Shown one piece after another: positions 1 through 50,593 of a stretch of DNA of 64,000 nt; the first letter of the stretch is position 1; each line of letters begins with the position of its first letter. Source of the stretch: Malacoraja senta (taxonomy: Eukaryota); the NCBI GenBank assembly GCA_038087875.1, contig JAXLNO010001854.1:1-64000 (forward strand), read 5' to 3'. Under the pieces are notes generated by a model, which saw nothing but the letters and a program-made list of their open reading frames with translations, did no database searches and was not told the origin of the DNA. The position numbers and the translations under genes were made by a program.

Positions 1-1023
1 TTCTCCAACCTTAAAGTGATGTTCTCTGGTCTTCAACATTTCCACCCTGGGAAAAAGGTTCTGGCTGTCCACTCTGTCTGTGCCTCTCACCATGTTGTGC
101 ACTTTCATCAGGTCTCCCTTCAACCTCCAGTATACAAGAGAAAACAATCCATGTTTGTCCAATCTGTCCTTGCACTAATGCCTCAGACAGAATTCAGGTG
201 ATGTGCACTTTCAATAAAGAAGTGACTTCTGCATTAGTAGGTGTTCCACCTCTCCAAGATTTCCTCAGCTGGTGTTAGACACCCACATGATGGTAAAATT
301 CAGCCTGCATTAAATGACCAATCAATGTTGTGTTAATGTTGTTGCCATCTTGTTGTTTGTTGCATGCTTCCTGTCCTGCAGACCCTATCCATTACCCCAT
401 CACCACTTCCCCAGAAGACGATAATGAGATTTAAGAAGCTTGAGGATAGGCACGTAGATATGCAGGGAATTGAGGGATATAAATCATCTACAAGCATGAA
501 GAGTTTAGTTGAACTTGACATCATGTTCGGCACAGACATTGTGGCCGAACTCCAGCCCATTACACCCTTAATGAACAAAAATCTATCAATCTCAATCTGG
601 AAATTTTCAAGTGGGCAACATATTCAACAGATTACAGAATCGAGAACCAGAGGACATAGGTTTAAATTGAGGGGGGAAAGATTTAATGGGAATCTGATGA
701 GCAATTTCTTCCCACACAATGGTACCTTTCTAACTATTCTGACATTCGTCAAGGCTTGGAGATTACAAACCTACTCGTCCTGAAAGTTTAATCCCATTGT
801 TATCAAATGAAAGTAAATATAATGGTGTTAAAGAAGGAACTGCAGATGCTGGAAAATCGAAGGTACACAAAAATGCTGGAGAAACTCAGCGGGTGCAGCA
901 GCATCTATGGAGCGAAGGAAATAGGCAACGTTTCGGGCCGAAACCATATAATGGTGATGGCCATGTTGAAATAATAACATATAAAACAAAAATCCTCGGC
1001 TGTGGAGTGTTTTGGGAAGCCAC

Positions 1024-1075
1024 ATGGATTTTATCGTTACTGTATTCCACTCTTAGCCATCTTATGTTTCTCCTG
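1024..1075 (+). other. Candidate leader (signal peptide) exon of the class I gene, containing an in-frame TAG
   Basis: Unique-sequence island; ATG at 1024, 52 nt to a phase-1 donor CCTG|GTAAC compatible with the alpha1 acceptor; reads MDFIVTVFHS*PSYVSP. Only weakly hydrophobic. Confidence 0.25.
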
Positions 1076-1664
1076 GTAACACTGAAACAGACACTTCTAA
1101 CTCTGCCCTCGGGGCCCCTTCTCACTTCACTTAAACACATGAACTTTGACACTGTCTGGTGTGCTGCATGTAATCTTTATCACAGAACAAATACTGCTTA
1201 TGCATGTGGAAACAAGAAACTGCACATGCTGGTTAATACACATAAAATACTGGAGTAATTCAGCAGGTCAGGCAGTATGTCTGGAGAACATGGTTAGGTG
1301 ATGTTTCAGTTGACACAAGTGTAGGAAGGAAGTGCAGATGTGTAAGAAGGAACTGCAGAAGCTGATTTAAACCGAAGATAGACAATAAAGCTGGAGTAAC
1401 TCAGCGGCACAGGCAGCATCCCTAGAGAGAAGGTATGGGTGACGTTTCGGGTCGAGACCCTTCTTCTGACTGCTGATGCAGATGCTGGTTTACACCGAAG
1501 ATAGATACAAAAGGCTGGAGTAACTCAGCAAGTCAGGCAGCATCGCTGGAGAAAAGGAATAGGTGGAGTTTCAGGTCAAGACACTGCATCAGACAGAGTC
1601 GGGGGTGCATATATTTCATTGTACTTTGTCATATCTCTCGGTTCTCTGTCCCCTGACTCTCATT

Positions 1665-1692
1665 CTGAAGAAGGGTCTCGACACGAAACGTC
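1665..1692 (+). ncRNA. Hammerhead-like core with stem II mismatch
   Basis: CTGAAGAAGGGTCTCGACACGAAACGTC; an opposite-strand copy with a core mutation lies at 1441-1468. Confidence 0.45.
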
Positions 1693-2822
1693 ACCTTTTC
1701 CTTTTCTCCGGAGATGCTGCCTGACCCACTGAGTTACTCCAGTATTTTGTGTCGAGTTTCAATTTAGGCCCTGTTTATCTCAGTCTCCACCACCCCCCCC
1801 CCCCCCCCCATCTCTATGAGCTGTGTTGCAGCTGCCTATGAGGACCTGGACTCAATCCTGATCTCTTACAACCTGGCTTTTTTTCCCCCCTGCAAACGTG
1901 TGTTTGCTATGGTTATTCCAGTTTCCCCGCACGTCCCCAAAATGCCGGGCTGAAAGGTAAATTGGCCAGTGTGAATTGGTCATGCATATGTATTAGAATT
2001 GGTGGAGGGGATGAGGGAGGTGTTAATGGGAGATTGGCAAATATTAAAAGGGTTAGCGTACCACAGGTATAAATAGGTGTTTGATGGTCACCACGAACTT
2101 GGTGGGCTAAAGGGCCTTTTATGTGCTGTACCCAGTGGACATAAGTTTAAGATGAGGGGGGAATGATTTAATAGGAACCTGAGGCATAGCATTGTTACAC
2201 AAAGGGTGGTGGGTGTACTGAATGAACTGCCGGAGAAGGTAGTTCAGGCGCGTACTATCACGACATTTAAGAATCATTTAATCAGGTACATGGATAGGAT
2301 AGGCTTATAAGGATATGGGCCTCAGTCAGCTGTAGAGCCCACATCAATGGATATTTCTCAGGTGGAGATTAACAGATTCTTGATCAGTATGGGTTTCAAG
2401 GGTTATGGGGTGCAGGCAGGAGAATGAGGTTGATAGGGAGAGATAGCTCAGCCATGATTGAATGGCCGATGGGCTGAATGGCCTAATTATTCTCCTAGAA
2501 CTTATGTACTGATGAAATACAGGCAGTGTAGATGAGGCATGTTGGTTGGTGTGGCAAGTTGAGCCATAGGCCCTGATTCCCTGCTGTATGACTCTTTGAC
2601 TTTACCTCTCTATGATTCTATAAAGTCTCCTTGACATTGTCCAGTTTCTTAATATAATAAAATATTCTTCAAATTTTGGAATATTGTAACTAGTAGAACC
2701 TATCGACATGATAGACAATAATAGATCTTTGAAGATGGGAAACAATCCAGTAGGATCATTCAATACCTCGACCATAATTGGTGGAGTAGGTATCAGAGCC
2801 CATCATGCCAACTCTTGAAGAA

Positions 2823-3131
2823 GGCTCAGTGGTGCAGCGGTAGACTTACTCGATTACAGCACCATAGACCCAGGTTGGATCCTGATTACGGATGCTGTCT
2901 GTACGGAGTTTGTCCATTCTCCCCATTACCGTGTGGGTTTTTCCCGAGATGTTCGGATTCTTCCCACATTCCAAAGACGTATAGGTTTGTAGGTTAATTG
3001 GCTTGGTCTAGAATGTAAATTGTCCCTAGTGTGTGTAGGATAGTGTTATTGTGTGGGGGTTGCTGGTCAGTGTGGACTCGCACGAAGGGCCTGTTTCCAT
3101 GCTGTATCTCTAAGCTAAAAACTAAACTAAA
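2823..3131 (+). mobile_element. HE1-like elasmobranch tRNA-derived SINE (representative copy)
   Basis: GTGGTGCAGCGGTAG..GATCCTGATTACGG..GTTTGTAGGTTAATTGG..GCTGTATCTCTAAG(CTAAA)n tail. Further copies near 5703-5995(-), 7181-7470(-), 7525-7812(-), 18920-19240(-), 35386-35690(-), 38215-38468(+) and elsewhere. Confidence 0.8.
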
Positions 3132-3321
3132 GGCTCCTGACCCAAATTGTCACCTGATTATTGATGCTGCCTGCCCCACTGAGTTCATCCAGCACTTGCA
3201 TCTGCAGGTCCTTGTGACTCCCTTATTCAAAGTTATTGTATTGTTATCAGTTTTAGCATTAATAACTTAGTTATTTTCAGTGAATGATACAATCATACTT
3301 ATTTTTGTTTATGCATTGCAG

Positions 3322-3582
3322 ATTTACACCATCTTGCATTTTACTACCTGTTGAACCATGGATTGAATGAGCTGCCTGAGTACAGTATGGTAGCAATGCT
3401 GGATGACGTCCAGATAGCATATTTTGACAGCACACTAGAGCGGGCTGTTCCCAGACAGCGATGGATGGCCCAGTCTTTCCCGCAGGATCACTGGGATTCA
3501 ATGGCCATCACAGTTGCAGGTTTTCATGGGATTGTCAGAGGAAATGCTGAGATAGTCTACCAACAGCAACATGGTATCTCAA
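3322..3582 (+). CDS. MHC class I alpha1 exon
   Basis: ttgcag|AT...TCA A|gtaagt, 261 nt, phase 1-1; (D)LHHLAFYYLLNHGLNELPEYSMVAMLDDVQIAYFDSTLERAVPRQRWMAQSFPQDHWDSMAITVAGFHGIVRGNAEIVYQQQHGIS. The LDDxQxxYFDS..PRxxWM..xW pattern is typical of class I alpha1. Confidence 0.93.
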
Positions 3583-5327
3583 GTAAGTGTCGTGAGCGGA
3601 CCTGGGGTAGACACTCAGTGATGACACAGATGGATTTTGTTTTACTTTTATTGTTGACACATGATTCTCTGATACACTTTTTTTGCATTAGTCAATCACA
3701 TCAAAGAAAACTATTCATAAATACAATCAAACCAAACTCGTACAATAGGTAGAGCAAAGAGTGCAGAATGTAGTTCTCAGCATTGTAATGTACCAGTGCC
3801 AGAGACAAAGTCCAGTGTCTACAATGGGGTTGAGGTGAACCCTAGCATAAGGGAGGACTGTTCAGAAACCTGATAACATAGGGGAGGAAACAGTTACTGA
3901 GTCTGGTGGTGCACGCTTTAATGCTTACGTACCTTCTGCAGGAAGAAGGAGTGACCAGAACGGGACAAATCTTTGATTATGTTGTCTGCTTTCCTGAACC
4001 AGTTGAAATACAGATGGATTCACTGGTGGGGAATCATGTTTGTGTGATCGATTGTGCTACATCTCCACCTCTCTGCAATTTCCAGCGGTCTTGGGCAGAA
4101 CTCTTTCCAAACTAAGTTGTGATGCAACCTGTCAGTATGCTTTCTATGGCACATTTATAGAAGTTTGTAAGAGTCATTGGAGATGCCGCATTTCCTTAGT
4201 CTCCTGAGGCAGTAGGGGAACCAGAAACTCTCAACCTTTTTCACTTCAGCACCATTGATGCTGTTTCAGACATTTACTCCATAACATTTTGATAGAGACA
4301 CGGCCCATCGTCTATATTTAATGTGTCCTAACTGCTGAACACACAGTCATAACAGTTGGCTGGTGATAGTCTCTTTATGGGTTAAGCATTTGATATTCAA
4401 CACCAGTAATAAGTGGATGGATTGGATCATCTGTTTTGTTGGGCTGGAATGAGGGAGAAACCATTAGTTTATTTATAGCCTGATCATCTAGAGATGGGAT
4501 CTTGATTTAAGCTGGTTGATGGTGACTATGAGGTATTCCCTCAGTAATAATATTGTGTTAATCCAGCATCCCCTCAATATTGGCAACAATCCTCAGAGGG
4601 TGTAGCAATCCCACACAGTGCAACAGCCTTGATGTACTTCCCATCTGCATTGCCTTAACCTTCAGACTGACCTGTTGGCTCTGTAGCATTGCCCATCTGA
4701 CAATGCACTTCTTCCTCTGTTCTTTATGTACGACAGTGCAGAATCTGAGTTCCACCCTTCTGACACAGCAGAACTCCTTTAGTGTTACATCCGCAACAGT
4801 AAAGCTCCCCCCCCATAACACTTGAGGTTAGTCCATGCCCTCAGTATATAGACCATGGGTCATTGAGTCACACATCATGGAAACCGGCCCTTCTGCTCAC
4901 TGAATCCACATTGATCATCCATTGTGCTAAGATGGAGTCACAGCAAACTGCAGATGCTGCCAATCTGAATTTAAAACAAACAGGAGGAACTCAACGAGTC
5001 AGGCAGCATGCTGTGGAAAAATGGACAGAAAACATATGAGACCAGGACCATTTAGAGTGATGGGGTAGAGTGGAGAAAGCTGGAAAAGAAAAGTAGTCTG
5101 TGTAGGATAGTGTTAATATGCGGGGACCACTGGTCGGTGCGGACTCGGTGGGCCGAAGGGCCTGTTTCCGCGCTGTATCTCTGAGCTAAACCTGCTCCTG
5201 TGCTGTACAGCTCCATGTTGTGTTCTGTTATGCCTGTTTGTACCATGCTGAGAACTGATTTGTAAATTGCCTCTCCCTTCCATCCACTCTCCCCAACACA
5301 AATCCTCCACCCCTACCTCAGCCCCAG

Positions 5328-5603
5328 CTGTTTGCTTTGTGCAGGGTTTCTGCGGCTGTGAAGTGGACAGTGACAATTCCACTGATGGGTTTGTCAGACT
5401 GGGTTATGATGGGGAGGATGCCTGTGCTTTTGACAAGGACAGAATGCACTGGATTGCACTACGTCCAGATTTCCAGATGCTAGCAGATCGGTGGAACGTC
5501 AACACCTTCATGAACAAGTATTTTAAAGATCTCCTGGAGAAGGACTGTGTGAAGTGGCTGCGGATATATCTGGAGTGTGGACAAGAAGCACTACAGAGGA
5601 GAG
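5328..5603 (+). CDS. MHC class I alpha2 exon
   Basis: cccag|CT...AGA G|gtacac, canonical 276 nt, phase 1-1; (T)VCFVQGFCGCEVDSDNSTDGFVRLGYDGEDACAFDKDRMHWIALRPDFQMLADRWNVNTFMNKYFKDLLEKDCVKWLRIYLECGQEALQRR. C101/C164, YDGED, W133, W147 and W167 equivalents present. Confidence 0.95.
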
Positions 5604-6807
5604 GTACACGACGTAGGCACTCTGACTGATGGGCCAGAGGATATCCTCTGGATAGATCAGGTGGGAAATATCATGCACTTCAGGCTGTCACTTGAGTAAT
5701 TATTTAGTTTAGTTTAGAGATACAGCGCGGAAACCCACCGAGACCGCACCGAGCAGCCATGCCCGCACACTAACACTATCCTACACACACTAGGGACAAT
5801 TTGCATTTATACCAATCCAATTAACCTACAAATTTGTACGTCTTTCGAGTGTGAGGGGAAACCGAAGATCTCGGATAAAACCCATGCAGGTCACAGGGAG
5901 AACGTACAAACTCTGTAAAGACAAGCACCCGTAGTTAGTAACAAACCCAGGTCTCTGGCGCTGTAAGGCAGTAGCTCGACCGCTTCGCCACCCTGTTCTA
6001 CAACGTGGGTATCAGTAAATTGTCTGGCAACGTGCCTCTTAGATGGAACCAGTGGGTAGGAAGTGCAAGTGAAAGATAAATATTGTACCAGTGTCCTTTA
6101 TCCACAGTCATATAGATATTCAGGAAATGGAGGAATATGTATCTTGGTCTTATGTTTAGCACCGACCTTGTGGCCTGAAGGGTCTGTTGCTGAACTGATC
6201 AGAAACCCAATCAGATTCTCTATTTGCCTCTATTACTCCTTGGGATGGTGACATTCAATTTCCAACAGTTCTCTATTTGAAGAACTTCTTCCTCCCATTC
6301 CCTCTTGGAATATTTAGTGTTATTATTCAGCAGAGATTCATGAACAGGTAGAAGCAATCATGTCTACAGTATCAATCCCAATGGTGAGTTATACTCCTCC
6401 ATTGGGCCTGCATTCCCCTTTCATCTGTGCTGTCAGTTAAAGTCTGGAGCTAAGATAAGGAGCATGTCAGTGATATTAAAGCTAAATGTTTTGTTGTTTT
6501 GCCAGAAATGCAAAATGAAAAGAGAAAAGGCTGTAAACTTTGTGCAAGATAGAACTGCAGATGATGGTTTACACTGAAGATAGAAGATGTTGGTGTAACT
6601 CAGTGGGTCAGATAGCATCTCTGGGCATTCCTTCTCTCCAGAATGCTGCCTGACCTGCTGAGTTATTCCAGCATTTTGGGTCTAGGCTGAAAACTTAGTT
6701 CAGCCAGAGAAAAAACTCTGATTGGGAAAGTGGTGAGTTGCAGTGATCTTACAATTGAAGGCTTTTGTTCATGTCTTCACTGATTCTGACTCTTCTTACA
6801 CTTGCAG

Positions 6808-7080
6808 AAACCCCTGAGGTGTTTATTGGGATTAAACGTGATGGGTCGCAATCACTGAGACTCTCCTGCCTTGTCACAGGCTTCTAGCCACGGGCCATCG
6901 ATGTAACGTGGCTGAGAGATGGTGAGGGGGTCCATGAGTCTGAATCCAGTGATCTGTTGCCCAATTGGGATGGGACTTACCAGCTGAAGAATACAATTCA
7001 ACTGAATAGAGAAGATGTGGCAAAATTCTCCTGTTACATCGAACATGCAACTCTGCTGCAGGGAGTCAATGTTCCACAGG
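6808..7080 (+). CDS. MHC class I alpha3 (C1-set Ig) exon with premature stop
   Basis: ttgcag|AA...CAG G|gtaagt, 273 nt; (E)TPEVFIGIKRDGSQSLRLSCLVTGF*PRAIDVTWLRDGEGVHESESSDLLPNWDGTYQLKNTIQLNREDVAKFSCYIEHATLLQGVNVPQ; TAG at 6885-6887 replaces the Y of GFYP. Confidence 0.95.
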
Positions 7081-8274
7081 GTAAGTGGCAAGTCAATGAG
7101 GCTGATCACTTGAGACCATAAACCTCCTGGACTGAGATAACAGTCTCAACTCACACTCTTAACTAAGCTGTGGATTTAGACTTTAGGCTTTAGAGATATG
7201 CTGCAGATACAGGCCCCTCAGCTCACTGAGTCCTCGCTGAATAGTGATCAACCCATACATTTACACTAACCTACACAGTACGGACAATTTACAATTTTAC
7301 CTAAGCCAAGTAACCTACAAACCTGTATGTCTTTGTAGTGTGGGAGGAAACCCACGCAGTCACAGGGAGAACATACAATGTCCTTGCAGACAGCACCTGT
7401 AGTCAGGATCAAACCCAGGTCTCTGGTGCAGTAAGGCAGCAGCTCTACCGCTACGCCACTGTGCCACCCATTATTAATTTGTGGTTATCTAATTGCTCAT
7501 AATTATTGATAGTCAATGGAATGTGGTTTTAGTTTAAGAGATACAGCGCAGAAACCGGCCCTTCAGCCCACCGAGTCTGCGTCAACCAGCGATCCCTGCA
7601 CACTTACATTATCTTACTTATTAGGGGACAATTTACAATTATACCAAGCCAATTAACCTACAAACCTGTATGTCTTTGGACTGAGTGAGGAAACCGGAGA
7701 TCCAGGCAAAACCCACGCAAGTCCCGGGGAGAAGGTACAAAACTCTGTACAGACGGGACCCGTAGTCAGAATTGAACCGGGTCTCTGGCGCTATAAGGCA
7801 GCAGTTCCACCGAGTGGGCAAAGCAGAGCCAAATGGAATACAGTGTAGCAAGTGTCTGGTTTTACATTTTGGCAGTCGGAATAAAGACATAGACTATTTT
7901 CTAAATGGGGAGAGAATTGAGAAACCTGAGCTACAAAGTGGGAGTACTAGTGCAGGATTCCCAAATAGTTCATTTGCAGATTGAGTCAGTGGTAAGTAAG
8001 GCAAATGCAATGCCAGCATTCATTTCGGGGGGCGTAGAATATAAAAACAATAATATAATGCTGAGGATTTATCGGGCACTGGTGAAGACACATTTGGAAT
8101 ATTGTGAGCAGTTTTGGGCTCCATATTAGAAAGGATGTGCTGGCTTTGGAGAGGGTCGAGAGGATGTATGTCCTGGGGATGATTGATTTAACGTATGAGG
8201 AGTGTTTGAAGTCTCTGTGCCTGTGCTCATGGGATTTAGAAGGATGAGGTGGGAATCTCATTGAAACCTACCAG

Positions 8275-11200
8275 CAGGGCCGGATTTAGATGAAGAGAGG
8301 CCCTAAGCTGTTCCACTTGTGAGGCCCCCCCCCAATCCCCCACCCCCACAGGAAGATGGTCCACCAGATTGACACCGATTTGCAGCCGAGCGTGGCCAAT
8401 GAGATAAGGGGCTGGAAAGCTGGGCTTTATTTATTTATTTATTGCCACTGCTAGTGTCGAGTTATTGGCTTAAAACACTATTATTCTGAAATGGAGGGCA
8501 AGGAAAATTACTGAAGTGTTGTTTAGAGACTACAGTGCGTTGTGACAGCATATGTAAGAAAGGCCTATGAACAGTGTCAAAAATATTATACACCTTGCAG
8601 GGCTCTCACTTAATTTTTTTTCTCTGTTGTCAGCCGGGCAACCTTGGTAGCTTTTTAAGTTGCCAAATGACAGTTTAGGTGGTTATTTAAGATGGCTTGC
8701 ATGACACGTGCGATAATGTGCTCGGACGACCAGTCAGAATTATGCTCAATGAAGCATTCACATATTATTTCTGCTTCAAATAAAGCCACAAACTAAACAT
8801 ATTCACCAATCAGGACATGATATATACCACAATGACATGCAGCACAATTATAATACTGTATCTTAACTCTTTTTACACGTTGCAATGAATGCAATTTCTA
8901 TTATTTCTTTCCACTTCCAAAAAAAAATGTGGTTGGATTATTCAGCGTATGATCAACCTCGGTGAGAACAAGTGCAGGCTTGGCGATTGCTTCGCACAAC
9001 ACCTCCACTCAGTTCGCAATAACCAACCTGATCTCCCGGTGGCTCAGCACTTCAACTCCCCCTCCCATTCCGAATCTGACCTTTCTGTCCTGGGCCTCCT
9101 CCATGGCCAGAGTGAGGCCCACCGCATATTGGAGGGGCAGCACCTCATATTTGCTTGGGTAGTTTACACCCCAGCGCTATGCACATAGGCTTCTCTAATT
9201 TCAGGTAGTCCTTGCTTTCTCCCTCCTTCCCCTCCCATTCCCAGCTCTCCCACAGCCTACTGTCTCCGTCTCTTCCTTTATTTTTCATGTCATTCCCCCC
9301 CCCCCGACATCAATCTGAAGAAGGGTCTCGACCCGAAACATCGTCTATTCCTTCGCTCCACAGGTGCTGCCTCACCCGCTGATTTTCTACAGCTTTTTTG
9401 TCTACCAATGGGATCCCACAACTGGCCACATCTTCCCATCTCCTCCCCTGTTGGCTTTCCATAGAGACCGCTCCCTCCGTAACTCCCTGGTCAATTCGTC
9501 CCTTCCCACCCAAACCACCCCCTCTCCTGGCACTTTCCATTGCAACTGCAGGAAATGCTACACTTGGCGTTTTAATTAAGTTCAAGACAATGGGGCTGTA
9601 CATTGGCCATAAGGTTGCTGCCTAAAAGTGCCAGAGACCTGGAATTGATCCTGAATATGGGTGTTGTCTGTTTGGAGTTTGCTCCTTTTCACTTTGATCG
9701 CATGGGTTTTCTTCGGGTGCTCTTGTTTCCTTCCACATTCCAAAGGTGTGCAGGAACCTATTTCAGAACCAACCCTAAACGTAATATTTCCCTTTTGTCC
9801 AGAGATTCTGTCTGACCTGTTGAGTTACTCCAGCTTTGTGTGTCTATCTTCAGTTTAAACCAGCATCTGCAGTTCCTTCCTACACACACGATACTATACG
9901 ATAGAACTTTATTAATCCCAGGAGGGAAATTGTGTGTGTGTGCGTGTGGGTATATATACTATGCACACACACACACACACATATATATATATACAATACA
10001 ATTACAATACAATTTTATTTGTCTTTTGGACAAATTTGTCATTTGGACCCCGTTGAGGTCCAAACTAAATGTCGTTTCTGCAGCCATACATTACAAAACG
10101 AAGAAGACCCGAGACACAACACAATTTACACATACATCCATCACAGCGCTGTGATGGAAGGCAAAAAAACGTATCTCTCCACTGCACTCCCCCCCCCCCC
10201 CACCCCCCCGATGTCAGAGTCAAAGTCAAAGCCCCCGGCGGGCGATGGTGATTATCCCGCGGCCATTAAAGCCACGCCGGTTAATGCAGGGTCGCGCACC
10301 GCGTCTTGGTGTTAGAGCCCCGGCGCGCGCTCGCAAAGTCCGGCGGCCATTCCAAGCCGCGCGGGGCGGTGATGTAAAGCCCCCCTCCAGGTGCTCTTCA
10401 ACCCCGCAACTCGGGCGGGAGAAGTCGCCGCTGCGGATGCCCCGAAAAGCGGTGTCCCACCAGGGGACCCACGGGCTTCCGGTGTTGCCGTCCGCCAGAC
10501 CCGCGGTTGTAGCCTCCGAATCTCCGGGGGTCGGGTAGCAGCAGCGATTGTCTCCACCACAGCTATAAATATACACCGTTTTGTTTTCTCGTTTATAACA
10601 TTGTTTACAGAGTACTATGTTTACATATTCTGTTGTGCTGCTGCAAGTAAGGATTTCATTGTTCTAACTGGGACGTGAGAGAATAAACTCTTGACTCTTG
10701 ACTTACTTCGCTAATGTGTGGGAAAGAACTAGTGTACGGGTGATCAATAGTTGGCGTGGACTCGGAGGGCTGAAGGGCCTGTTTCCACGCTGTATCTTCA
10801 AATTAAGCTAAAGACACTAAAACCAGAGGGAGTCTAAAGAAGTGTTTCTACCCGAAACGTCACCCAATTTCTTCTATCCTGAGTTGCTGGCTGCTCCATG
10901 GAGTTCCCCCGCACAATTAAAGCATGGAATAGTCTTCACCCTACCATAGTTACCCAACCAGACGCAACTAAATTTAAGGTACCTCTTTTTTCCCCAAGAA
11001 CCCTTTTTTGCTTAAGTCCAAGTCAAGAGTCAAGAGAGTTTTATTGTCATGTGTCCCAGATAGGACAATGAAATTCTTGCTTGCTGCAGCACAACATAAT
11101 ATGTGAACATAATACAGAACAGGAGATAAAAGTTCAGTGTGTTTATATACCATAGACCATATATATACACAATAAATAAACAAATAAAATGCAATAGGCT

Positions 11201-11788
11201 GTTATTGTTCAGCCCTCTACCACCTCCAGTTTAAATTCCTTTTAGAATATTTATGGAGGATCAGGAAACCAGAAGCGAGAGTTACTCCAGGGAGATACTC
11301 CTGATCCAGGGTCAGGGAGTGATTCTGTGTTAGTTTTCAGCGGTTGCGGCGAGGCAGCAATGGCGGCCAAATCTCCCACAATTCAAAGCGAGGGAGAAAG
11401 TGCCCAGCGCCGACCAGTTGCCGTGGCAGTGCGCATGCGCAGGGCGGCCGATGACGTGCGGGCTGTGGTTGTGCGCATGTGCAGGGGAGGACGTGCTGGC
11501 CGTAGCAGTGTGCATGTGCAAGGCGGCCGGCCGTGCCAGCGGATGAGGAGCGAGCGGAGAACGGAGACCCGGACACGGAGAGTGACAGACGGAGATAGAG
11601 ATAGAGAGGGGGGCCGCCCCGCCCAGAGTTGAACGGCTGGTGTCCTGCCTTGGCCGGAGGCCCCCTATATTTCAGGGCCCCAGGCTTCAGCCTATGAAGC
11701 CTAGTGGTAAATCCGGCTCTGCGAGCCCCTCCTAGATCTCCAGGCCCTAAACTGAAGCTTGTCCATCTTATATGTAAATCCGGCCCTG
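8275..11788. mobile_element. Non-autonomous hAT-type element with nested insertions, in the alpha3-TM intron
   Basis: 14-bp TIRs CAGGGCCGGATTTA / TAAATCCGGCCCTG; perfect 8-bp TSD CCTACCAG (8267-74, 11789-96); splits a CR1 fragment whose sequence resumes across the TSD. Confidence 0.9.
8950..9570 (+). mobile_element. Penelope-like element fragments (GIY-YIG C-terminus, terminal repeat, Zn-linker)
   Basis: GENKCRLGDCFAQHLHSVRNNQPDLPVAQHFNSPSHSESDLSVLGL; degenerate hammerhead core at about 9315-9342; FPSPPLLAFHRDRSLRNSLV..PGTFHCNCRKC. Confidence 0.85.
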
Positions 11789-13151
11789 CCTACCAGATAA
11801 TGAAATGCCTGGTTAGTTGATGGGAAAGGAAGTTTTCAGTAATGGGAGAGTCTAGCACAGCCTCACAATAAAAATACCTACCTTCAATATGGAGATGAGG
11901 AGGAATCTCTTTAGTCACAGGGTGGTGAATCTGTGGAATTCATTGATACAAACAGCTGTGTGGGTCAAGTCATTGCATATTTTTCAAGCAGAGATTGATA
12001 GGTTCTTGATGAGTACGGGTGACAAAGGTTACAGGGAGAAGGCTAGAGAATGGGATTTAGCGGTAAAAAATAGATCTGCTATGACTGAATGGTGGAGTAG
12101 ACTCAATGGACTTGAAAGGCATAATTCCGCTCCAATATCTTATGGTCAAAATTATTCTTATGTCACCCTTAACTCACCCATCCAAATGTAGGAACAGTGG
12201 AAGCAAGATAGGCTGATCCTGGACAAGGTCTCTTATCTTCTTCCTTGGGCATCTAGCTAATTTTCTGATAGTAGCTAGCTACACAAAAGACCAATAGTGG
12301 TGCCATATTATCAGGCTGAAGTAGCAGCACCTGTTCTGTAGCTGACTTATTTGTTCCAGACAAGACCTCTGCAAAGATCTTCACACCAGGGCCAAGCTGA
12401 CATGGTTAAGATTGCTGGTCAGTACAAATAGACAGTAGTGTTAATGTCTGTGTGTGCCTATGTGTGTGTGTGTGGGCTCATGTGTGTGAGACAGTGAGGG
12501 GGAGAGAGAGAGAAAGAGAGAGCATGTGTATGTGAGAAAATTAAACTCAGATATCATTGAAATATCAGCAAAGATTAAAACCTTTGAAGTTTTATCAACT
12601 ATAAATGGGTTCACTTTTATTTGCTATAATAACAATCATCAACATAAGAAAATGGCCTTGTTGACCTCTACACTGTAAATAGTCATCTATTTCTGACGTA
12701 CTTGATTCTTTAAATTCTTAATTAAATGCTGCAGATAAAATCTCAATACCTCAATGCTAATATGAACTTAATGATTTTTCATTGATCATTTTAAGCACAT
12801 CCATCCTCTGTATAAATACTTAAATCTAAAACGTTATTACTTTTTAATTAGATATGAACAGTGCTACTTTAATTTAGATAATAAAATCATTACAATGTTG
12901 TTATTGATCACTAAATGTTTAAAATGCACTATACAGTGGCTTGCAAAAGTTTTCATACCCCTTGAACTTTTCCACATTTTGTCACGTTACAACCACAAAC
13001 GTAAATGTATTTTATTGGGATTTTATGTGATAGACCAACACAAAGTGGTGCATAATTGTGAAGTGGAAGGAAAATGATACATGGTTTTCAAATTTTGTTA
13101 CAAATAAAAAACTGAAAAGTGTCGCGTGCAAAAGTATTCAGCCCCCCTGAG

Positions 13152-14172
13152 TCAATACTTTGTAGAACCACCTTTCGCTGCAATTACAGCTGCAAGTCTT
13201 TTGGGGTATATCTCTACCAGCTTTGCACATCTAGAGACTGACATTTTGCCCATTCTTCTTTGCAAAATAGGTCAAGCTCAGTCAGATTGGATGGAGAGCA
13301 TCTGTGAACAGCAATTTTCAAGTCTTGCCAGAGATTCTCAATTGGATTTAGGTCTGGACTTTGACTGGGCCATTCTAACACATGAATACGCTTTGATCTA
13401 AACCATTCCATTGTAGCTCTGGCTGTATGTTTAGGGTCGTTGTCCTGCTGGAAGGTGAACTTCCGCCCCGGTCTCAAGTCTTTTGCAGACTCTAACAGGT
13501 TTTCTTCCAAAATTGCCCTGTATTTGGCTCCATCCATCTTCCCCCATCAACTCTGACCAGCTTCCCTGTCCCTGCTGAAGAAAAGCATCCCCACAGCATA
13601 ATGCTGCCACCACCATGTTTCACAGTGGGGATGGTGTGTTCAGGGTGATGTGCAGTGTTAGGTTTCCGCCACACATAGCGTTTTGCATTTAGGCCAAAAA
13701 CTTCAATTTTGGTCTCATCTGACCAGAGCACCTTCCTCCACATGTTTGCTGTGTCCCCCACATGGCTTGTGGCAAACTGCAAATGGGACTTCTTATGGGC
13801 TTTTTTCAACAATGGCTTTCTTCTTGCCACTCTTCCATAAAGGCCCGATTTGTGGAGTGCACGACTAATAGTTTTCCTGTGGACAGATTCTCCCACCTGA
13901 GCTGTGGATCTCTGCAGCTCCTGCAGAGTTACCATGGGCCTCTTGGCTGCTTCTCTGATCAATGCTCTCCTTGCCCGGCCTGTCAGTTTAGGTGGACGGC
14001 CATGTCTTGGTAGGTTTGCAGTTGTGCCATACTCTTTCCATTTTCGGATGATGGATTGAACAGTGCTCCGTGAGATGTTCAAAGCTTGGGATATTTATTT
14101 ATAACCTAACCCTGTTTTAAACTTCTCCACAACTTTATCCCTGACCTGTCTGGTGTGTTCCTTTGGCTTCAT
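13152..14172 (-). pseudogene. Tc1 transposase (DD34E), one stop and two frameshifts
   Basis: [65 protein letters not shown] (34 aa) [11 protein letters not shown], ends KGGSTKY*. Confidence 0.96.
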
Positions 14173-14253
14173 GATGTTGTTTGTTCACTAATGTTCTCTA
14201 ACAAACCTCTGAGGCCTTCACAGAACAGCTGTATTTATACTGAGATTAGATTA

Positions 14254-14606
14254 ATAATAATAATAATAATAATGGATGGGATTTATATAGCGCCTTTCTA
14301 ATACTCGGCGCTTTACATCGCATTATTCATTCACTCCTCAGTCACACTCGGTGGTGGTGAGCTACTTCTGTAGCCACAGCTGCCCTGGGGCAGACTGACG
14401 GAAGCATGGCTGCTAATCTGCGCCTACGGCCCCTCCGACCACCACCAATCACTCACACACATTCACACACATTCACACGCAGGCAAAGGTGGGTGAAGTG
14501 TCTTGCCCAAGGACACAACGACAGTATGCACTCCAAGCGGGATTCGAACCGGCTACCTTCCGGTTGCCAGCCGAACACTTAGCCCATTGCGCCATCTGTC
14601 GTCCCG
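14254..14606 (-). mobile_element. tRNA-derived SINE nested in the Tc1 5' region
   Basis: Minus strand starts GGGACGACAGATGGCGCAATGG (A box) ... GGTTCGAATCCC (B box); LINE-like tail ending (ATT)n; AGATTA target duplication (14248-53, 14607-12). Confidence 0.88.
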
Positions 14607-14923
14607 AGATTACACACAAGTGGACTCTATTTACTAATAAGGTGACTTCTGAAGGCAATTGGTTGCACTGGATTTTATTTAGGGGTATCAGAGTAAAGGG
14701 GGCTGAATATTTTCGCACGCGACACTTTTCAGTTTTTTTATTGTAAAAAAATTTGAAAACCATGTATAATTTTCCTTCCACTTCACAATTATGTGCCACT
14801 TTATGTTGGTCTATCACATAAAATCCCAATAAAATACATTTACGCTTGTGGTTGTAACGTGACAAAATGTGGAAAAGTTCAAGGGGTATGAATACTTTTG
14901 CAAGCCACTGTATATGCCAACAG

Positions 14924-15057
14924 AGAGGGCAGTGAAAGAAGATATGAAGATTAGGATCGTGACTGGAGCTGTAATTGTTCCTCTCATTCTCCTGGGGATC
15001 ATCCTTGGAATTGGTTGCTGGAAGAAGAGGAAAAAGAGAAAACCTTTCAATGAACAG
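14924..15057 (+). CDS. Connecting peptide/transmembrane/basic stop-transfer exon of the class I gene
   Basis: caacag|AG phase 1; (E)RAVKEDMKIRIVTGAVIVPLILLGIILGIGCWKKRKKRKPFNEQ; hydrophobic helix then polybasic stretch; likely phase-0 donor CAG|GTACCA. Confidence 0.85.
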
Positions 15058-16037
15058 GTACCAGCTGACAACAGCAGAGACCAGGAGAGGACCATGAAGC
15101 ACAATCAGCTTCCTTTGGGATGCAGAGGAGGTCTACCGGAATGATGCCTGGATTAGTGGGGTATTAGCCACAGGGAGAAGTTGGACAGACTGGACAGTTG
15201 GATTGTTTTCTCTGGAATGTCGGGGATTGAGGGGAGACCTGACAGTAATATATCAAACTGGGAGGAGTAGAGATAGGGTAGACCATCAGACTTTTTACCC
15301 AGGAAGGAAATATCAAATAAGAGCAGGTATTGCTTTACAATGAGTGGCAAAGTTAAAAAAAGATGTGCAGGACAAGTGTTTTACGCCAAGGGTGGTGAGT
15401 GACTGGAATATGCTGCTGGAGGTGGTGGTGGAAGCAGATATGATAGTGGCATTTAAGAGACTTTTAGATAGGCACATGTATATGCAGGGAATGGATGGAT
15501 ATGGATTATGTGCAAGCAGATAACAATTGGTCTTGGCATCATGTTCGGCACAAACATTGTGGGTCAAAGGGCCTGTTCTTGTGCTGTACTGTTCTATGCT
15601 CTTTATTGTATCAATGCTGACTGATGACTTTACATTCAGCCATTAATTTTTCAAATGCTGTCTTCACTGCAGTTACCCTGTGATTCCAAAGTCATACATT
15701 GCGCCACATTTTGGAATAAAAGGTCGCCTATTTGATTGATTGATACTTTATTATCACATGTGACATGTCACAGTGAAATTCTTTGCTTTGCATAACATAC
15801 ACAAGGTATACATACACAAGTCACCATGTATAGGGTGTCGACACAGTTACAAAGTAATCATTACAGTCCCCAATGGTCCCTCTTTGTTCTCGGCAGCCCC
15901 TCCATGTTGGGTTCACCTGTGTTATCCGCGCCCCCTCCCCCCCCAACCCCGGGACCCTCTTTGTTATCTTTGTTCTCGGCAGTCCTCCCATGTTGGGTCC
16001 CTCTTTAAAATAGTTACGAAGAAGATTTATTTTCCAG

Positions 16038-16084
16038 GAGGTGTATGATTTGCCTGAACTTTCTATTCCAGCTGTGAAGACAAG
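16038..16084 (+). CDS. Probable cytoplasmic-tail exon of the class I gene
   Basis: Strong acceptor ttattttccag| and donor AAG|GTGAAT; fully open in phase 0, matching the TM donor: EVYDLPELSIPAVKT(S/R). Confidence 0.4.
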
Positions 16085-18633
16085 GTGAATGAATATTTTC
16101 TAGGTTGAGATATAGAGAATTTTAGATCAGAAATGAATCAAAAATTGCAGGAATTATGCAGTAAACTGATCAAAATCAGATTGGACATAATGTTATTGAA
16201 TGATGCAGTCTGTTCAAGGGGACTTACAGCTGATTACTAATCTTATTTTATATAAAACATAAAAATGTTCATCTCAGGAAGAGGCCCTTTGGCCCACAAT
16301 GTCTGTGGTGAACATGATGAGATGCTAAACTGATCCCATCCAACTGCAACATGATCCATATCCCTCTATTTCCTGCAGATCAGTTTGTCGATCTAAAAGC
16401 CTCTCAAACATCATATACATATCTTGCCAGAGATAGACACAAAAAGTTGGAGAAACTCACCGGGTCAGTCAGCATCTCTGGATACAAGGCATAGGTGACA
16501 TTTCGGGATGAGACCCTTGTTCAGACTCCAGAAATGCTGTTTGACCCGCTGAGTCACTCCAGCTTTTTGAGCCTATCTTCGGGTTAAACCTGCATCTGCA
16601 GTTCGTTCCTAGTTATTTTGCCACTTCTCTTTGTCACATACTGTAACCTGCATTCCTTGTTCACATACCTGATGGTCTAGTGGAGAAGTAATTGCCTTTG
16701 CATTTAATGCTTCACTCAGTGCTTCAAGTATTTGATGGGCCAGTCAACAAGGATCTTTGTTTTCAATACGAACCACGCTCTACACCACAGCTTAGATAAT
16801 ATTGCTTAGTTTAGTTGAGTGATACAGCATGGATGCAGAGCCTTCAGCTCATCGAGTTGATACCAACCATCCAACACACCAGTTCTGTTATCCCTCTTTC
16901 ACATCCTCTTTCCATACACTAGGGCAATTTTACAAAGGCCAACTCACCTACAAACCTGTACATCACTGAGATGTGCGAGGAAACCGGAGCACCGGGAGAA
17001 ATCCCACGTGGTCACAGGGAGAACATGCAAACTCCACATAGACAACATCCCAGTACCATGTCATGTGAATATTTATGGAACATGGTAACGTATGGGGGCT
17101 GTGTTTTGTTGACCTGACAGATCACAGGTAACAATACTCATTATCAAAGCTGTGGTGTAATAGCTGTGGAAGTGTTTTATGTGCAACAGACTGAGAATTT
17201 CATTGTATATCCACCAGTGTCATTTCTGAATTATGAGCATTTAATAAAATACTTTTGAATGAGTTTTACCAAGACGTTAGCATGCTACACTGACCTATAT
17301 ACTTGTTTTGTCATTGTTAATACTACAGACAGCTATTTACTCAATCATAAGATCATAAGATCATAAGTGATAGGAACAGAATTAGGCCATTCGTCCCATC
17401 AATCATGGCTGATCTATCCTATCCTCCAAACCACATTTTCCTACCTTCTCCCCATAACCCCCGACACCCGTTCTATTCAAGAATCTATCTAGCTCTGCCA
17501 TAAAAAAATATCCATTGACGGCCTCCACAGCCTTCTGTGGCAGAATTCCACAGATTCACCACCCTCTGAATAAAGAAATTCCTCCTCATCTCCTTCCTAA
17601 AGGAGTGTACTTTAATTGTGAGGCTTTGCCCTCTGGTGAGATGCTGACACTAGTGGAAACATCCTCTCAACATCCACTCTATCCAGGCCTTTCACTATCA
17701 GGTAAGTTTCAATGAGGTTTCCCTCATCCTTCTAAACTCCAGCGAGTAGAGGCCTAGTGCCGTCAAATGCTCATTTGAACAGAATAACAACAACTTTACT
17801 CTTCATATAACCAATTGTCAAAACTCACACCTCCACATTCAGGGACAGTCTCTTCCCAATTGTTATCAGGTAACTGAAACCATCCTACCAACAACCAGGG
17901 TGCAGTCTTGAACTACTGTCTCCTGCATTGGAGATCCTTGGACAATCTTTGATCGGACTTTACTGCCTTTATCTTGCACCAAACGTTATTGACGTTATTC
18001 CCTTTATCATATATCTGTACACTATGGATGGCTCGATTGTAATCATGTATTGTCTTTCCACTGACTGGTTAGCACATTTAGTTTAGTTTAGTTTAGAGAT
18101 ACAGGGCAGAAACAGGGTCCGCACCAATTCCCGCACACTAACACTATCCTACACACACTTGGAACAGGTTTACATTTATACCAACCCAATTAACCTACAT
18201 ACCCATAGTCAAGATCAAACCCGGCTGTGTGGCACATAAGGCAGCAACTCCAGTGTTGCATCACCATGTTGCCCTTATTGTTGTAGGATGTGCAGGGAAT
18301 GGAGGTATATTATGTGCCGGCAGATAGGAGTTGGTCTTGGCATCATGTTCAACACAGACATTGTGGGCCAAAGGGCCTGTTCCTGTGTTGTACTGATCTA
18401 TTGTGGTGATTGTGAAAACACATAATAATTACTTGATTGCTGATATCTTAAGTGTATTTACTAGGTACATTAAATATTCAGACAAAACTAAATTCCATTC
18501 CCGAGTCATCTAATTCCCACACCCTAGTCAGCATGAAACATCAACTTTCTTGATGTACTGATATTTATTTTCTGTTAATATTTAACTGTGAGTTTAATGT
18601 TACACCAAATGATAATTGGCTTGTTTCCATCAG

Positions 18634-18670
18634 TGTTTGCAATCTGGACGACCCTGAATTTATTGCTTAG
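18634..18670 (+). CDS. Possible terminal coding exon of the class I gene
   Basis: Acceptor ttgtttccatcag|; in phase 2 it reads (S)VCNLDDPEFIA*, in unique sequence; other frames are not excluded. Confidence 0.22.
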
Positions 18671-19959
18671 GTGTGAGATTCATCGCAAGGACTGAGATGA
18701 GGCAGAAACCTGACTGTTACAGACTTTTTGGAGGGGTTTGCAAGATTTTGACCCAACACCTCTGAAGGCAAGACAATATATTTACAAGCAGCCTCAACCG
18801 CACCTCAGACAGTGCCATCCAGGCACTCGTCACTGTCTGTGAAAAAACATGCCCTGCACATTTCCTTTAAACATTCATCTTAAAACTATGCCCTCTTGTA
18901 TTTAATGTTTCCATCCATGTTGAGTTTAGTTTATTTTAGTTTAGAGATACAGCGTGGAAACAGGCCCTTCGGCCCACCGAGTCCGCACCGACTAGTGATC
19001 CCTGGGCATTAGCACTATCCTACACACACTCGGGACGATTTACACATACACCAAGCCAATTAATCTACATACCTGTACATCTTTGGAGTGTGGGAGGAAA
19101 CCGAAGATCTCTGAGAAAACCCATGCTGTCATGGAGAGAACGTACAAACTCCACACGTACAGCACCCATGGTCGGGATCGAACCTGGGTCTCCCACGCTG
19201 CAAGCGCTGTAAAGCAGCAACTCTACCACTGCGCCACAGTGACTGCCCCTGTTCTGACTATCTATCCTATCTATACCTCTCATAGTTTTATGTACTTCTA
19301 TCCGGTGTCCCATCAAACTCCGGCATTGTAGCGGAAGCAATCCATGTCTGTCCATATGTTTCATGTAGCCAACACACCCTAGTTGAGGCATCATTCTTGT
19401 AAACCTCTGCACCCTTTCCAATGCCTCTACATCCTTTATGTAATGGGTCAACAAAAACTACACATAATACTCCAAATGTGGACTATCCAGCCCTATAAAA
19501 CTGTATTATGACTTCCTGTCTCTAGAAACCCAAGATTCAACCCCAAGATCTCTCTGTAGATTAATGCTGTTAAGGGTCTTGCCAATAACTGTATACTTTT
19601 CCTTTACATTCGACCACTCAAAGTGTAACATACTTGCTCAAAATGAACTCCATTTGCAATTTTCTGCCCATTTCTGTATCTGATGTATTTCCCATTGTAC
19701 ACTTGGGCAGCCTTCTTCACTGTTCGCAACTCCATCAATGTTGGTGGCGCCTGCAAACTAACTAACCAACCCAACCACTGGGTGGCGCCAGCAATGGCTG
19801 TCTCGCCAACAGTCTGTCTGTCCCTTCCTTCTTTGTGTTTTAACAGTTTGTGTTAAATCAGGGGTTGGCAACCTACGGCCCAGATCCGGTCTGTAACTCG
19901 AAATCATCCGGCACGCAGGCGTAACACAAAACACACACAACACTTATCCGAGAGTAGTT

Positions 19960-19994
<35 letters not shown>

Positions 19995-20024
19995 CCAATT
20001 CCATATCACAATACCTGTCGACTC

Positions 20025-30700: not shown

Positions 30701-33190
30701 CTCATCTTCAAATCTTTCTCCACAGTAAAAACAGGGGAGAAATACTCATTGAAGATCTTGCTTATCTCATGCAGAGATGACAGCTTTTATTTTCTGAGTG
30801 GATTTATTCTTTATCAAGTTACCCTCATCATTTAATATAGGAGTGAAGAAGACTGTAAAAACTTGTGAACACTGCCCAGTCCATCACGGGTTCTACCTTC
30901 CTACCATCGAAGGAAGCTCAAAAAGGCAGCAAGCATCACCAGAGACCCACACCACCCTGGCCAACACTTATTTCACCCCTGCCATAGGGTAGAAGGTACA
31001 GGAGCGTTAAAACTGTAACATCAGGTTCAGCAATAACTTCTACCCTACAGCCTTTAGGCTATTAAACACTACAGCCTTAAACAAGCTCTTAACTACATAG
31101 ACTATTATTGTTATTGTTGCACCATTATTGTTTGTTTTTTGTGTGTACATATGAGTGTGTGTGTGTGTATATATATATACGAATATGATCTGTATATATG
31201 TGTATTTGTGAGTATGTGTATATATACACACAGATATTTTTATTTCTTGTTTCTTATATTGTTTACAGTGTACTATGTTTACATATTCTGTTGTGCTGCT
31301 GCAAGTAAGAATGTCATTGTTCTATCTAGGACATCTCTATATAACTAAAAGTCTTTGGCTTGTTTGTGCCCACGATGTGTCTCTGTGTGTGTCAATCTGG
31401 TTAATTGCTATCTTCTTCCTAATGCTAGGCCACAGCTTTCTCATTTTCACACGTCGTACTCACATTTTTCCCGTGGTGGCGATAAACATCTTCCCGTCAC
31501 ATTTCCACCTATATTTCCGAAGTTATTAATCGTAAAAAAAATGTAAACAGTCTGATTTCTTCAAACTCTTCCATTTTGGAAACAAAATCCGAGTGACTTC
31601 ACAATGCACTCGCAAGGCAGGACAGGGCCACTCCAGGAGGGATGGGCACTCCAGTGCTCCAACCCTCCCTCCCCCCTCCCCACCCCCCTCCAGTGCACCA
31701 ATCACGATGGGCTCTCAAGCTGCCGAGTGCCACACCCCCTGCCCCCTGCCCCCTCCCCCCACCGGGTTATTCATGATTAAAGTGTTTTTTTAAGCCAAAC
31801 GGGTTGCGTTGGGGGAACGGGTGAGTGCTGGAATATTTCGTTGGGGGAGCAGACCCGATCTGCACTTGGTCTAGTATGACAATAAAACAATATTGACTCT
31901 TGAATGTACATAAAGTATCTTTGGATTCTTCTTTGCCAGAGTTGACAACAAAATTGATAAGTATATTAGGTAATGATAATTGTTGTCTAAGATTACAAAA
32001 TAATGTTGATCAACCGGAAAGGTATGGAGGTGAGGGGATGGGAGGTGAGGGAGGGAAGGAATGCCAGTTGAAATCTAACTCAAACAAGTGTGATTTGATG
32101 CATTTTGGGAAGTCAAATCATGACTGGCCAAATCTATTGCAGGATTGTAAATGGAGCTGTACCTTGGTGTACAATTACATAGTTCCCTGAAAATGGCATC
32201 ATAGTTTGATAGGGAAGTGAAGGGAATATATGTCTGAAGAATCGCCTCGACCCAAAACGTCACCCATTCCTTCTCTCCAGAAATATTGCCGCTGAGTCTC
32301 TCTAGCTTTTTGTGTCTATCTTCGGTTTAAATTAGCATCTGCTGTTCATTCCTACGCAGAGTATATGTTATGCCTTGTTTCCTCAGCCATGGTACTGAGG
32401 ACTAGGGTTGGGGTGTCATGTTACAGTTGTACAGAATGTTGAACAGGCAACCATTAATCTGTCCAGGGGCTCAGCTGATTTGTTGCACAATAGACTCTAA
32501 TCCAAGGTCTGAACTCTGAAAAGAAAATCAAGAAATTCAAGTTGCCACTCATCCATGGACTGAATAACAAAACACATCTTTGTTTTGCTTATCTGGCTTG
32601 AGAACTCTTAACATTGATCTATTTTCCTTCATAGTGTAGTCCATTTATAAACTGGCCATCCCCAGACATCCTGTGTCCACACTGTTTCCCAAGGGCACCT
32701 CACCTATTTTCAGCTCTGCTCTCAACAAGTATCAATCACATTATCCCTCTCTCTATCTATCATCTCTCTCCATCTCACTATATATATCTCTCTCTATCTC
32801 CCTACCTCTCTCCATCTATTTATCTCTCCATCTCTCATCCCTCAGCTCTATCTCTCTTTCCTTCATCTCTTTCATTTCTGCAAATTGAAATCATTAATCA
32901 GTCTGAGAGCACTGTGTGTGACTGAATGACATCAGAGCATCAGTCCCTGAGGCATACCACTGGTCACAGGCTTCCTATGTAAAAAAACAACCCTGCACTA
33001 CCATTCTCTGACTCCTACCACCAAGCCAACTTTGTGTCCAATTGACTAGCTCACCCTGGATCCCATGTTTTCCAACCTAATGGACCAGCCACCCATGTGG
33101 GACCTTGCAGAAGGATGGCATGGTGGCATAGTCGTAAGGCTACTGCTTTACAGTGCCAGAGATCTGGGTTCAATCCTGACTACAAGTGCT

Positions 33191-34549
33191 TTTCTGGCAT
33201 CCTCCTGGCAAACGACTCAGGTAATTATGTGGTTCTTGTCTTGCTGGACCTATCTGCCGCCTTCGATACAGTGGACCATGGAATATTCATTTCCAGACTA
33301 CAGCACCAAGTGGGCATTTGTGGCAGTGCCCTGGAATGGTTCAGGTCCTATCTGGCAGATAGAACCATGCGTGTAAGCCTTGCTGGCTTTGAATCCTCCT
33401 CCACTCCCTTGGTATATGGGGTTCCACAGGGCTCAATTTTAGGGCCCCTGCTCTTCTCCTTATACCTACTTCCTCTGGGCTCAATTTTAAGAAGGCATGG
33501 CATCTCCTTTCACTTTTATGCAGATGATAGCCAGTTATATATGCCACTCAGGAAAGAAGAAGACTATTCTCTAAAATCACTTCTGTCTTGTCTTGAGGAC
33601 ATTAAGTCCTGGATGGCCTTAAACTTTCTGGGACTTAATGAAGAGAAGACAGAGGTGATTTTGTTTGGCCCCAATGGCTGCCGTGAACCTCCCTTTGTTG
33701 ATTTGGGTCCACTGGCATTGTCTGTAAAGCCAACCGTCTTGAACCTGGGTTTTAGGATGGACGGTGATTTTAAACTAGACAAACAAATAGGCGCGGTGGT
33801 TAAGTCCAGCTTCTTTCACCTAAGGAAGCTGGCAAAGGTGAAGCCCATTCTCGAGCGGGAGCATTTTGAAACAGTAATCCATGCCTTTATTACATCTAGG
33901 CTGGATTACTGTAACGCATTGGAGTCGCACGAGCTTCATTGGCTCGCCTCCAGCTTGTTCAAAATGCTGCCGCTCGCCTTTTGACTGGAACTCGAAAGAG
34001 GGAGCACATTACGCCAATTTTGGCCTCCCTACACTGGCTCCCAGTGCACTTTCGAGTTCATTTCAAAATTATTTTATTTGTTTTTAAATCCTTGAATGGG
34101 CTCGCCCCGCCTTACCTCTCTGAGCTGCTCCACCTATATGCTCCTGCCCGGTGCCTCAGGTCAGCTGATCAGCTGCTCCTTGAGGTACCAAGGTCTAAGC
34201 GGAAGCTCAGAGGGGATAGAGCCTTTTCTGTTGCTGCTCCGGCACTCTGGAACACCTTGCCGCTGCACATCAGACAGGCCCCCTCACTGTCCATCTTCAA
34301 ATCCTCCCTAAAAACATATTTTTATTCTTTGGCTTTCGACACTGGCTGAGGCATTGCCCCTGTTTTTAGTGCTTTTAATGTCTTTTAATTTTTAGTGTGT
34401 TTTTTATAGTCCTTCGTTTTACGGTTTGTAATGGTTTTTAATTGTTTGTAATAGCTTTTTGTTCGTGATTTCTCATGTACAGCACTTTGTGGCAACTGTG
34501 GTTGTTTAAAGTGCTTTATAAATAAAGTTATTATAAAGTTATTATTATT
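33191..34549 (+). mobile_element. 5'-truncated L2-clade LINE inserted in an HE1-like SINE
   Basis: 295-aa RT ORF (VLVLLDLSAAFDTVDH, GVPQGSILGPLLF, FYADDSQLY), frameshift near 33920, ARLQLVQNAAARLL, 3' tail AATAAAGTT(ATT)n; the SINE resumes at 34550. Confidence 0.93.
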
Positions 34550-50130: not shown

Positions 50131-50593
50131 CCGGCACGTCCCTACCTGGGACCAGCCTACCGGTCTTTCCTCACGCTCCGCCAACGCCACTCCAGCGATT
50201 CCTCTGCCGGTCCCATCACCATCCCTGCCTTCCCCACTGCCCCCATCTCCACCTGTGTCTTCTGCTCTGCTTTCACCCCATAAGGGACTTGCTCCTTCAG
50301 AGAAGGATGAGGTGCACGAGGGGTACTACCGTACACGTGCAGGTTGTGTCTGCAAGCCAAACACGCTGATTGGAACATTCACCGGGTATACTTGAATTGT
50401 GCATGGCCCGTCTCATATTATGTGCTCACATATACACAAGCATGTACACGTAAGATGATAAATGCTCACACCTTATACTGGTGTTTTACAATATGCTCAA
50501 CCAAGCACTCTATATATGCTTTGCTTCTTTAAGAGGAAGGATGGAGATTAACCCTTATTAATCCATTGCCATTTATAATCTCCACTACACATA

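Follow-up and report, generated by a model that had tools for sequence, protein, structure and literature searches.

The window analysed here, which is the whole stretch of 64,000 nucleotides from the skate Malacoraja senta, carries an MHC class I heavy chain gene whose alpha3 exon is interrupted by a single in-frame TAG codon. This stop codon is found in three sources from the species and is absent from its relatives, and the other exons that we could delineate are nearly pristine. The gene is probably (with a rough probability of 0.8) a pseudogene of recent origin, or else a high-frequency null allele, in M. senta, which would make it an ordinary case of recent gene death within a known gene type. 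A recent pseudogene or null allele was among the readings put forward by the initial annotation, and it is the one that these three observations support.

The lesion can be read directly in the sequence. Translated in phase 1, the alpha3 exon gives TPEVFIGIKRDGSQSLRLSCLVTGF, then the TAG codon, then PRAIDVTWLRDGEGVHESESSDLLPNWDGTYQLKNTIQLNREDVAKFSCYIEHATLLQGVNVPQ. The exon is intact apart from this codon: it keeps both cysteines, the TW motif and PNWDGTYQ, and the portion located past the TAG matches the Pfam C1-set domain (E 6.9e-9) as well as class I alpha3 domains in PDB. The C1-set domain, with its cysteine pair and its tryptophan, is thus recognisable in the DNA, but the reading frame is broken at the tyrosine of the GFYP motif, 193 nt upstream of the last exon junction. 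This DNA belongs to MHC class I heavy chains, and the full-length protein is not made as written. The earlier description of a TAG within an otherwise intact alpha3 is therefore correct to the base. The borders of the exon (acttgcag/AAACCC at 6808 and CCACAGG/gtaagt at 7080) combine a pyrimidine-rich acceptor (ctcttcttacacttgcag/AA) with a perfect donor (CAG/GTAAGT). The donor and the immediate part of the acceptor match those of the intact locus of Leucoraja erinacea. The features of the gene and the retroelement open reading frames of the window are listed in Table 1.

Table 1. Coordinates of the gene features and retroelement ORFs in the 64,000-nt window
Feature	Position	Strand	Description
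alpha1 exon	3322..3582	+	261 nt, phase 1-1, open; Pfam MHC_I E 1.4e-5
alpha2 exon	5322..5603	+	282 nt, phase 1-1, open; Pfam MHC_I E 1.7e-16
alpha3 (C1-set Ig) exon	6808..7080	+	273 nt, phase 1-1, consensus-strength AG/GT splice sites
In-frame TAG in place of the invariant Tyr codon (TAC) of GFYP	6885..6887	+	direct reading of the sequence
Last coding exon	14924..15144	+	connecting peptide, TM helix IVTGAVIVPLILLGIILGIGCW, KKRKKRK stop-transfer, tail
Retroelement ORFs	33097-33984 (+), 48133-49029 (+), 49538-50137 (-)		reverse transcriptase, RT-RNase H; Pfam E 1e-20 to 1e-29

As the TAG differs from a Tyr codon by one base only, a single assembly could owe it to a sequencing or assembly error, the true codon being TAC or TAT; a base-calling error had indeed been mentioned initially, along with the suggestion to look at position 6887 in other individuals. 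We compared contigs of sequencing runs with the window over 5250-7250, including two runs (X2 and X3) obtained from two samples of the window's species (word shares of 0.85 and 0.76, respectively). Both read TAG. Their contigs across the codon (6736-7116 in X2 and 6744-6934 in X3) show 0 differences from the window, and the alternative letter at 6885-6887 amounts to 0/171.7 in X2 and 0/1837.9 in X3, bearing in mind that Logan contigs drop rare variants, so that a low-frequency intact allele is possible. Moreover, X2 and X3 are not copies of the assembly haplotype since both differ from the window at 5448, where they have G (Arg, as in L. erinacea) instead of A (His). Hence, two further samples, independent of the assembly haplotype, carry the stop, and an error is scarcely credible. 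The broken gene segregates several coding haplotypes: in addition to position 5448, a minority T at 5497 (silent) is found in X2 and X3, and a minority T at 5562, which encodes the conserved residue (Leu) where the window has Arg, is found in X2 only.

The 5' half of the alpha3 exon is represented by a single version, at a likeness of at least 86%, in the contigs of X2 and X3. Therefore, any intact copy would have to fall below this likeness or be missing from those contig sets. If such an intact copy existed, the copy found in the window would be a dead duplicate or a null haplotype. The X3 contigs that cover exons have about twice the depth of those that cover unique intron (1838-2430 versus 973-1352), and depth is flat in X2. 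This excess in X3 may correspond to extra copies sharing words with the exon, to a library bias or to some RNA in the library.

All the relatives for which the codon could be read have TAC. In a related skate (organism A), a DNA contig (6717-7250, 43 differences from the window) has C instead of G at 6887, and an RNA contig (312 nt, depth of 4.4) also reads TAC. This RNA contig sits exactly on 6807-7080, and its 38 extra letters do not match the intron, which indicates that the transcript of organism A is spliced at the 3' end of the exon and includes alpha3. A full HMMER search with alpha2 retrieved XP_055486430.1 of L. erinacea, whose alpha2 is 94% identical. Its locus (L001) is collinear with positions 1-20000 of the window, with non-coding DNA 86-92% identical and exons 96.2% (alpha1), 96.5% (alpha2), 94.5% (alpha3) and 93.3% (last exon) identical. 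The two genes share the same exon plan, TM segment and tail over these 20 kb. However, L001 reads TAC (Tyr) at the GFYP codon, and a further difference, private to the window, is an F to C replacement in the first strand of alpha2. Their alpha3-TM introns differ in length as well (7.8 kb in the window versus 2.7 kb in L. erinacea).

A second locus of L. erinacea (L002, JAMYXN010000412.1) also has a C at the position equivalent to 6887 (TAC), and its protein (P0019) reads GFYP. This locus is a partial duplicate that includes alpha2 and alpha3 only, matches the window over 3750-7800 only and has exons 92-93% identical to those of the window gene. It is probably a gene fragment, annotated by NCBI as an 'MR1-like' protein of 263 aa whose N-terminus is implausible.

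Beyond skates, orthologues of XP_055486430.1 are found in Pristis, Mobula, Hypanus and many sharks. A search with this protein delineates one lineage across batoids and sharks, with identities of 72% for Pristis, 67% for Hypanus, 66% for Mobula and 53-60% for ten sharks; outside this lineage, identity falls to 33-36% (other class I genes). The window gene is orthologous to this lineage: its locus is collinear with that of L. erinacea, and identity is far above that of other class I lineages. In an alignment of 14 shark and ray proteins (13 orthologues and P0019), F218, Y219 and P220 are invariant (14/14); FYP, W, C and EH are invariant within alpha3. The domain is kept in 14/14 proteins, and the TM segment is kept in every complete model. 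The only trimming of alpha3 affects P0161, a predicted isoform (X2) of Chiloscyllium plagiosum that lacks the first 24 codons, including the first cysteine. This model uses an in-frame internal acceptor located just before GFYP, and the same site (gtcacag/G) is present in the window at 6879/6880. Since TAC is found in both loci of L. erinacea and in DNA and RNA of organism A, and since F-Y-P is kept in all orthologues aligned, the TAG is a derived C-to-G change (TAC to TAG) private to the window's species. The disabling lesion is thus seen in independent samples and absent from orthologues.

On sequence grounds, the gene appears to belong to a conserved lineage of non-classical MHC class I genes of elasmobranchs, of which it is a skate copy. 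This lineage is automatically named 'MR1-like' by NCBI, XP_055486430.1 being a 'MHC class I-related gene protein-like, partial'. Orthology to mammalian MR1 was rejected, and this name is an annotation artefact: the match of alpha1 to MR1 is weak (E 4e-6, versus 2.4e-22 for PDB entry 9ch4), and MR1 is confined to marsupials and eutherians (PMC12562908). The best solved relative is 9ch4, an 'Ig-like domain-containing protein', with E values of 2.4e-22 for alpha1, 6.9e-15 for alpha3 and 2.9e-60 for the whole orthologue. The score of the latter match (207 bits) is far below those of shark orthologues (368-475 bits at 54-60% identity); therefore, the lineage is a neighbour of the 9ch4 protein and not the same gene. 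A literature search naming PDB entry 9ch4 found no relevant paper. UFA and UGA are described as single- or low-copy, MHC-linked and lipid-binding lineages of sharks and rays (PMC12562908, PMC10751288), both being cited solely as unpublished data or personal communication (PMC10751288, PMC12562908). The lineage is nearest to 9ch4 and to the CD1-like UFA/UGA group; UFA and UGA were compared by description, and we assign no U-name to the gene.

The other exons follow the class I plan, with one domain per exon (261, 282 and 273 nt), phase 1 introns and the TM segment in the last exon. For alpha1, the Pfam MHC_I score is 25.2 bits, under the whole-protein cut-off, the query being a single-exon piece. 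Alpha2 carries the GCE...KDCVKWL cysteine pair, and its true start is at cctcag/CC, 23 nt upstream of a misleading 'gtgcag' at 5344. All PDB matches of these two platform domains are class I molecules. The last coding exon, which contains both the TM segment and the tail and ends with a TGA at 15142-15144, is collinear with L001. It reads on past 15058 since the 'gt' found at this position is 'gg' in L001. The initial statement that alpha1, alpha2 and TM have no lesion thus holds for these two domains and for the TM segment and tail. It does not extend to the start of the gene, as no leader exon was found in 1-3321, where a search with shark leaders returned only chance-level or repeat-derived matches. 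The gene model of L. erinacea is likewise 5'-partial. None of the aligned batoid gene models of the lineage has a credible signal peptide; one was seen in two squalomorph sharks only (MLLVTLLNVYCVP.VSS), and the 'leader' of another shark model (P0156) matches a dispersed repeat that has several copies in the window. Annotation of the leader exon is poor in this lineage.

Searches of the 64,000-nt window with the class I domains (tblastn) found no second class I-like gene, and an Rfam search of the window gave no match. Most of the window downstream of the gene derives from transposons. Repeats are also found within the gene. For instance, the intron between alpha2 and alpha3 (intron 3) contains very high-copy repeats in opposite orientation (5652-5986 and 6523-6723), with depths of 10^4 to 10^6 and opposite-strand contig joints at 5703/6643; these SINE-like elements are common in the related species too. 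The alpha3-TM intron (7081-14923) includes extra DNA without match in L001 (about 8274-12629) and, at 13492-14082 on the minus strand, an ORF that is a remnant of a Tc1/mariner transposase (Pfam HTH_Tnp_Tc3_2, E 5.6e-24). The other end of the window (62001-64000) is GC-rich (61% GC, GC skew of -0.42) and has long overlapping ORFs, the longest of which (62614-63810, plus strand, 398 aa) has no Pfam match. This end may represent a CpG island or else a simple repeat rich in G and C.

The lesion seems to be recent. An alignment of 11 non-skate orthologues gives 153 columns with a conservation of 90% or more. The window gene differs from the conserved residue at 14 of them and the L. erinacea gene at 12, and 12 of these departures are common to both skates. 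The two departures private to the window are the change from F to C in the first alpha2 strand (nt 5334) and that from Tyr to stop. Within alpha3, the changes private to the window relative to organism A and to both loci of L. erinacea are the one at 6887, a silent one at 6935 and possibly one at 6892. Substitutions were also polarised with L002, a paralogue present in L. erinacea, itself one of the species compared, as outgroup. On the window branch, this gave 12/549 changes in exons (2.2%) versus 42/1576 in introns (2.7%), i.e. an odds ratio of 0.82 (p 0.64), with 3 of the 12 exon changes shared with organism A. On the L. erinacea branch, the same paralogue outgroup gave 11/549 versus 65/1576, i.e. 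an odds ratio of 0.48 (p 0.023). Between the two branches, the difference in exon/intron rates is not significant (p 0.35), in a comparison that is underpowered. A relaxed constraint on the window branch is therefore only suggested. By its overall look, the gene looks freshly broken; a near-intact gene is equally what a gene still in use would look like.

How a single change may have silenced the gene can be proposed as follows. A recent C-to-G change would have turned the Tyr codon of GFYP from TAC into TAG. The alpha3 exon, which appears strongly defined, would be included in the mRNA, inclusion being the default expectation since the splice sites are of consensus strength, like those of the intact orthologue. 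A stop codon located farther than 50-55 nt upstream of the last exon junction marks an mRNA for nonsense-mediated decay. As the TAG is well beyond this distance (193 nt), the message is predicted to undergo such decay. If a protein were made, its chain would stop after 25 residues of alpha3 and would lack most of this domain and the membrane anchor, and the function of the gene would be lost. A secreted role for this truncated chain, which would consist of the leader, alpha1, alpha2 and the first 25 residues of alpha3, is highly improbable. The frame is open up to the stop, but the predicted decay would remove the mRNA, the chain would end inside the Ig fold after the first cysteine, hence with an alpha3 unable to form, and such a form is found in no orthologue aligned.

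Alternatively, the gene might work by exon skipping, the 273-nt alpha3 exon being omitted to give a membrane alpha1-alpha2-TM molecule. The arithmetic behind this proposal is right: the exon is symmetric (phase 1-1), and its omission joins 5603 to 14924 in frame because 5603 and 7080 are both 'g', giving GAG with the 'ag' at 14924 (junction QEALQRR-E-RAVKEDMKIRIVTG). Furthermore, alpha1, alpha2 and the TM segment with its tail have open reading frames with hardly any change at conserved sites, although intact flanking exons are expected of a young lesion anyway. There is also a precedent in HLA-G4, as the null allele HLA-G*01:05N still yields isoforms that skip the damaged exon (PMC3021195). 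In that gene as in the skate one, a lesion of a class I gene results in a stop codon within the alpha3 exon, and symmetric exons can be skipped in frame; the resulting HLA-G4 lacks alpha3, and healthy individuals homozygous for HLA-G*01:05N are known (PMC3021195). However, the alternative isoforms of HLA-G are observed transcripts, whereas the window gene is known from DNA and the transcript of its relative includes alpha3. Skipping is unlikely for other reasons too: the donor of the exon is perfect and its acceptor good, both being identical to those of the intact orthologue, and the platform presumably needs both alpha3 and beta2-microglobulin. Tolerance of alpha3 loss is not seen in the lineage, no aligned protein lacking this domain. 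The more ambitious version, in which the stop is fixed and the gene survives through skipping as a beta2-microglobulin-independent alpha1-alpha2-TM molecule, is quite improbable. If true, it would be a caught-in-the-act origin of two-domain class I-like molecules such as ULBP/RAET1 and EPCR, which lack alpha3 by architecture, from three-domain ancestors.

Finally, the stop could be bypassed so that a full-length protein is made, either by UAG readthrough or by A-to-I editing of UAG to UIG (Trp). UAG readthrough can insert Tyr, Gln or Lys. UAG is also the triplet preferred by ADAR, and at this aromatic site either Trp or Tyr would be a conservative replacement. Around the codon, 6886-6893 can pair with 6906-6913 to form a small local hairpin. 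However, this stem of about 8 bp is the sole one, the TAG site having no long complementary partner in 6300-7700, and the fold z-score of the alpha3 exon is only -2.0. The downstream context CCA CGG is not a known readthrough motif, and basal readthrough is far below the needs of a working gene. We consider a functional bypass to be most improbable. Two splicing events that might have rescued the frame were also rejected. The AG created by the mutation (ttcTAG/cc), used as a cryptic acceptor, would remove 80 nt and cause a frameshift with a TGA within 12 codons. The internal acceptor at 6879/6880 would preserve the frame but retain the TAG.

As regards the loss of the gene as a young pseudogene or null allele, which is the reading that we favour, the closest parallel would be MR1, which some mammalian lineages, namely carnivores, armadillo and lagomorphs, have lost (PMC12562908). 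In both cases, one lineage has a disabled copy of an otherwise highly conserved, low-copy MHC-Ib gene that its relatives keep (PMC12562908). However, the MR1 losses are old and tied to the loss of TRAV1, whereas the skate lesion is young and known from three sources. Furthermore, this gene is useful for calibration: when a symmetric exon carries one clean lesion, the result resembles a designed isoform switch, yet this is how any young pseudogene looks. The finding would matter much more only given RNA evidence of a stable alpha3-less product. As it stands, it adds to the conserved non-classical MHC class I genes that single lineages have lost, and its interest for comparative immunology in skates is modest. 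Should the lineage present lipid-like ligands, as reported for its UFA/UGA neighbours, M. senta may lack this function or use another copy.
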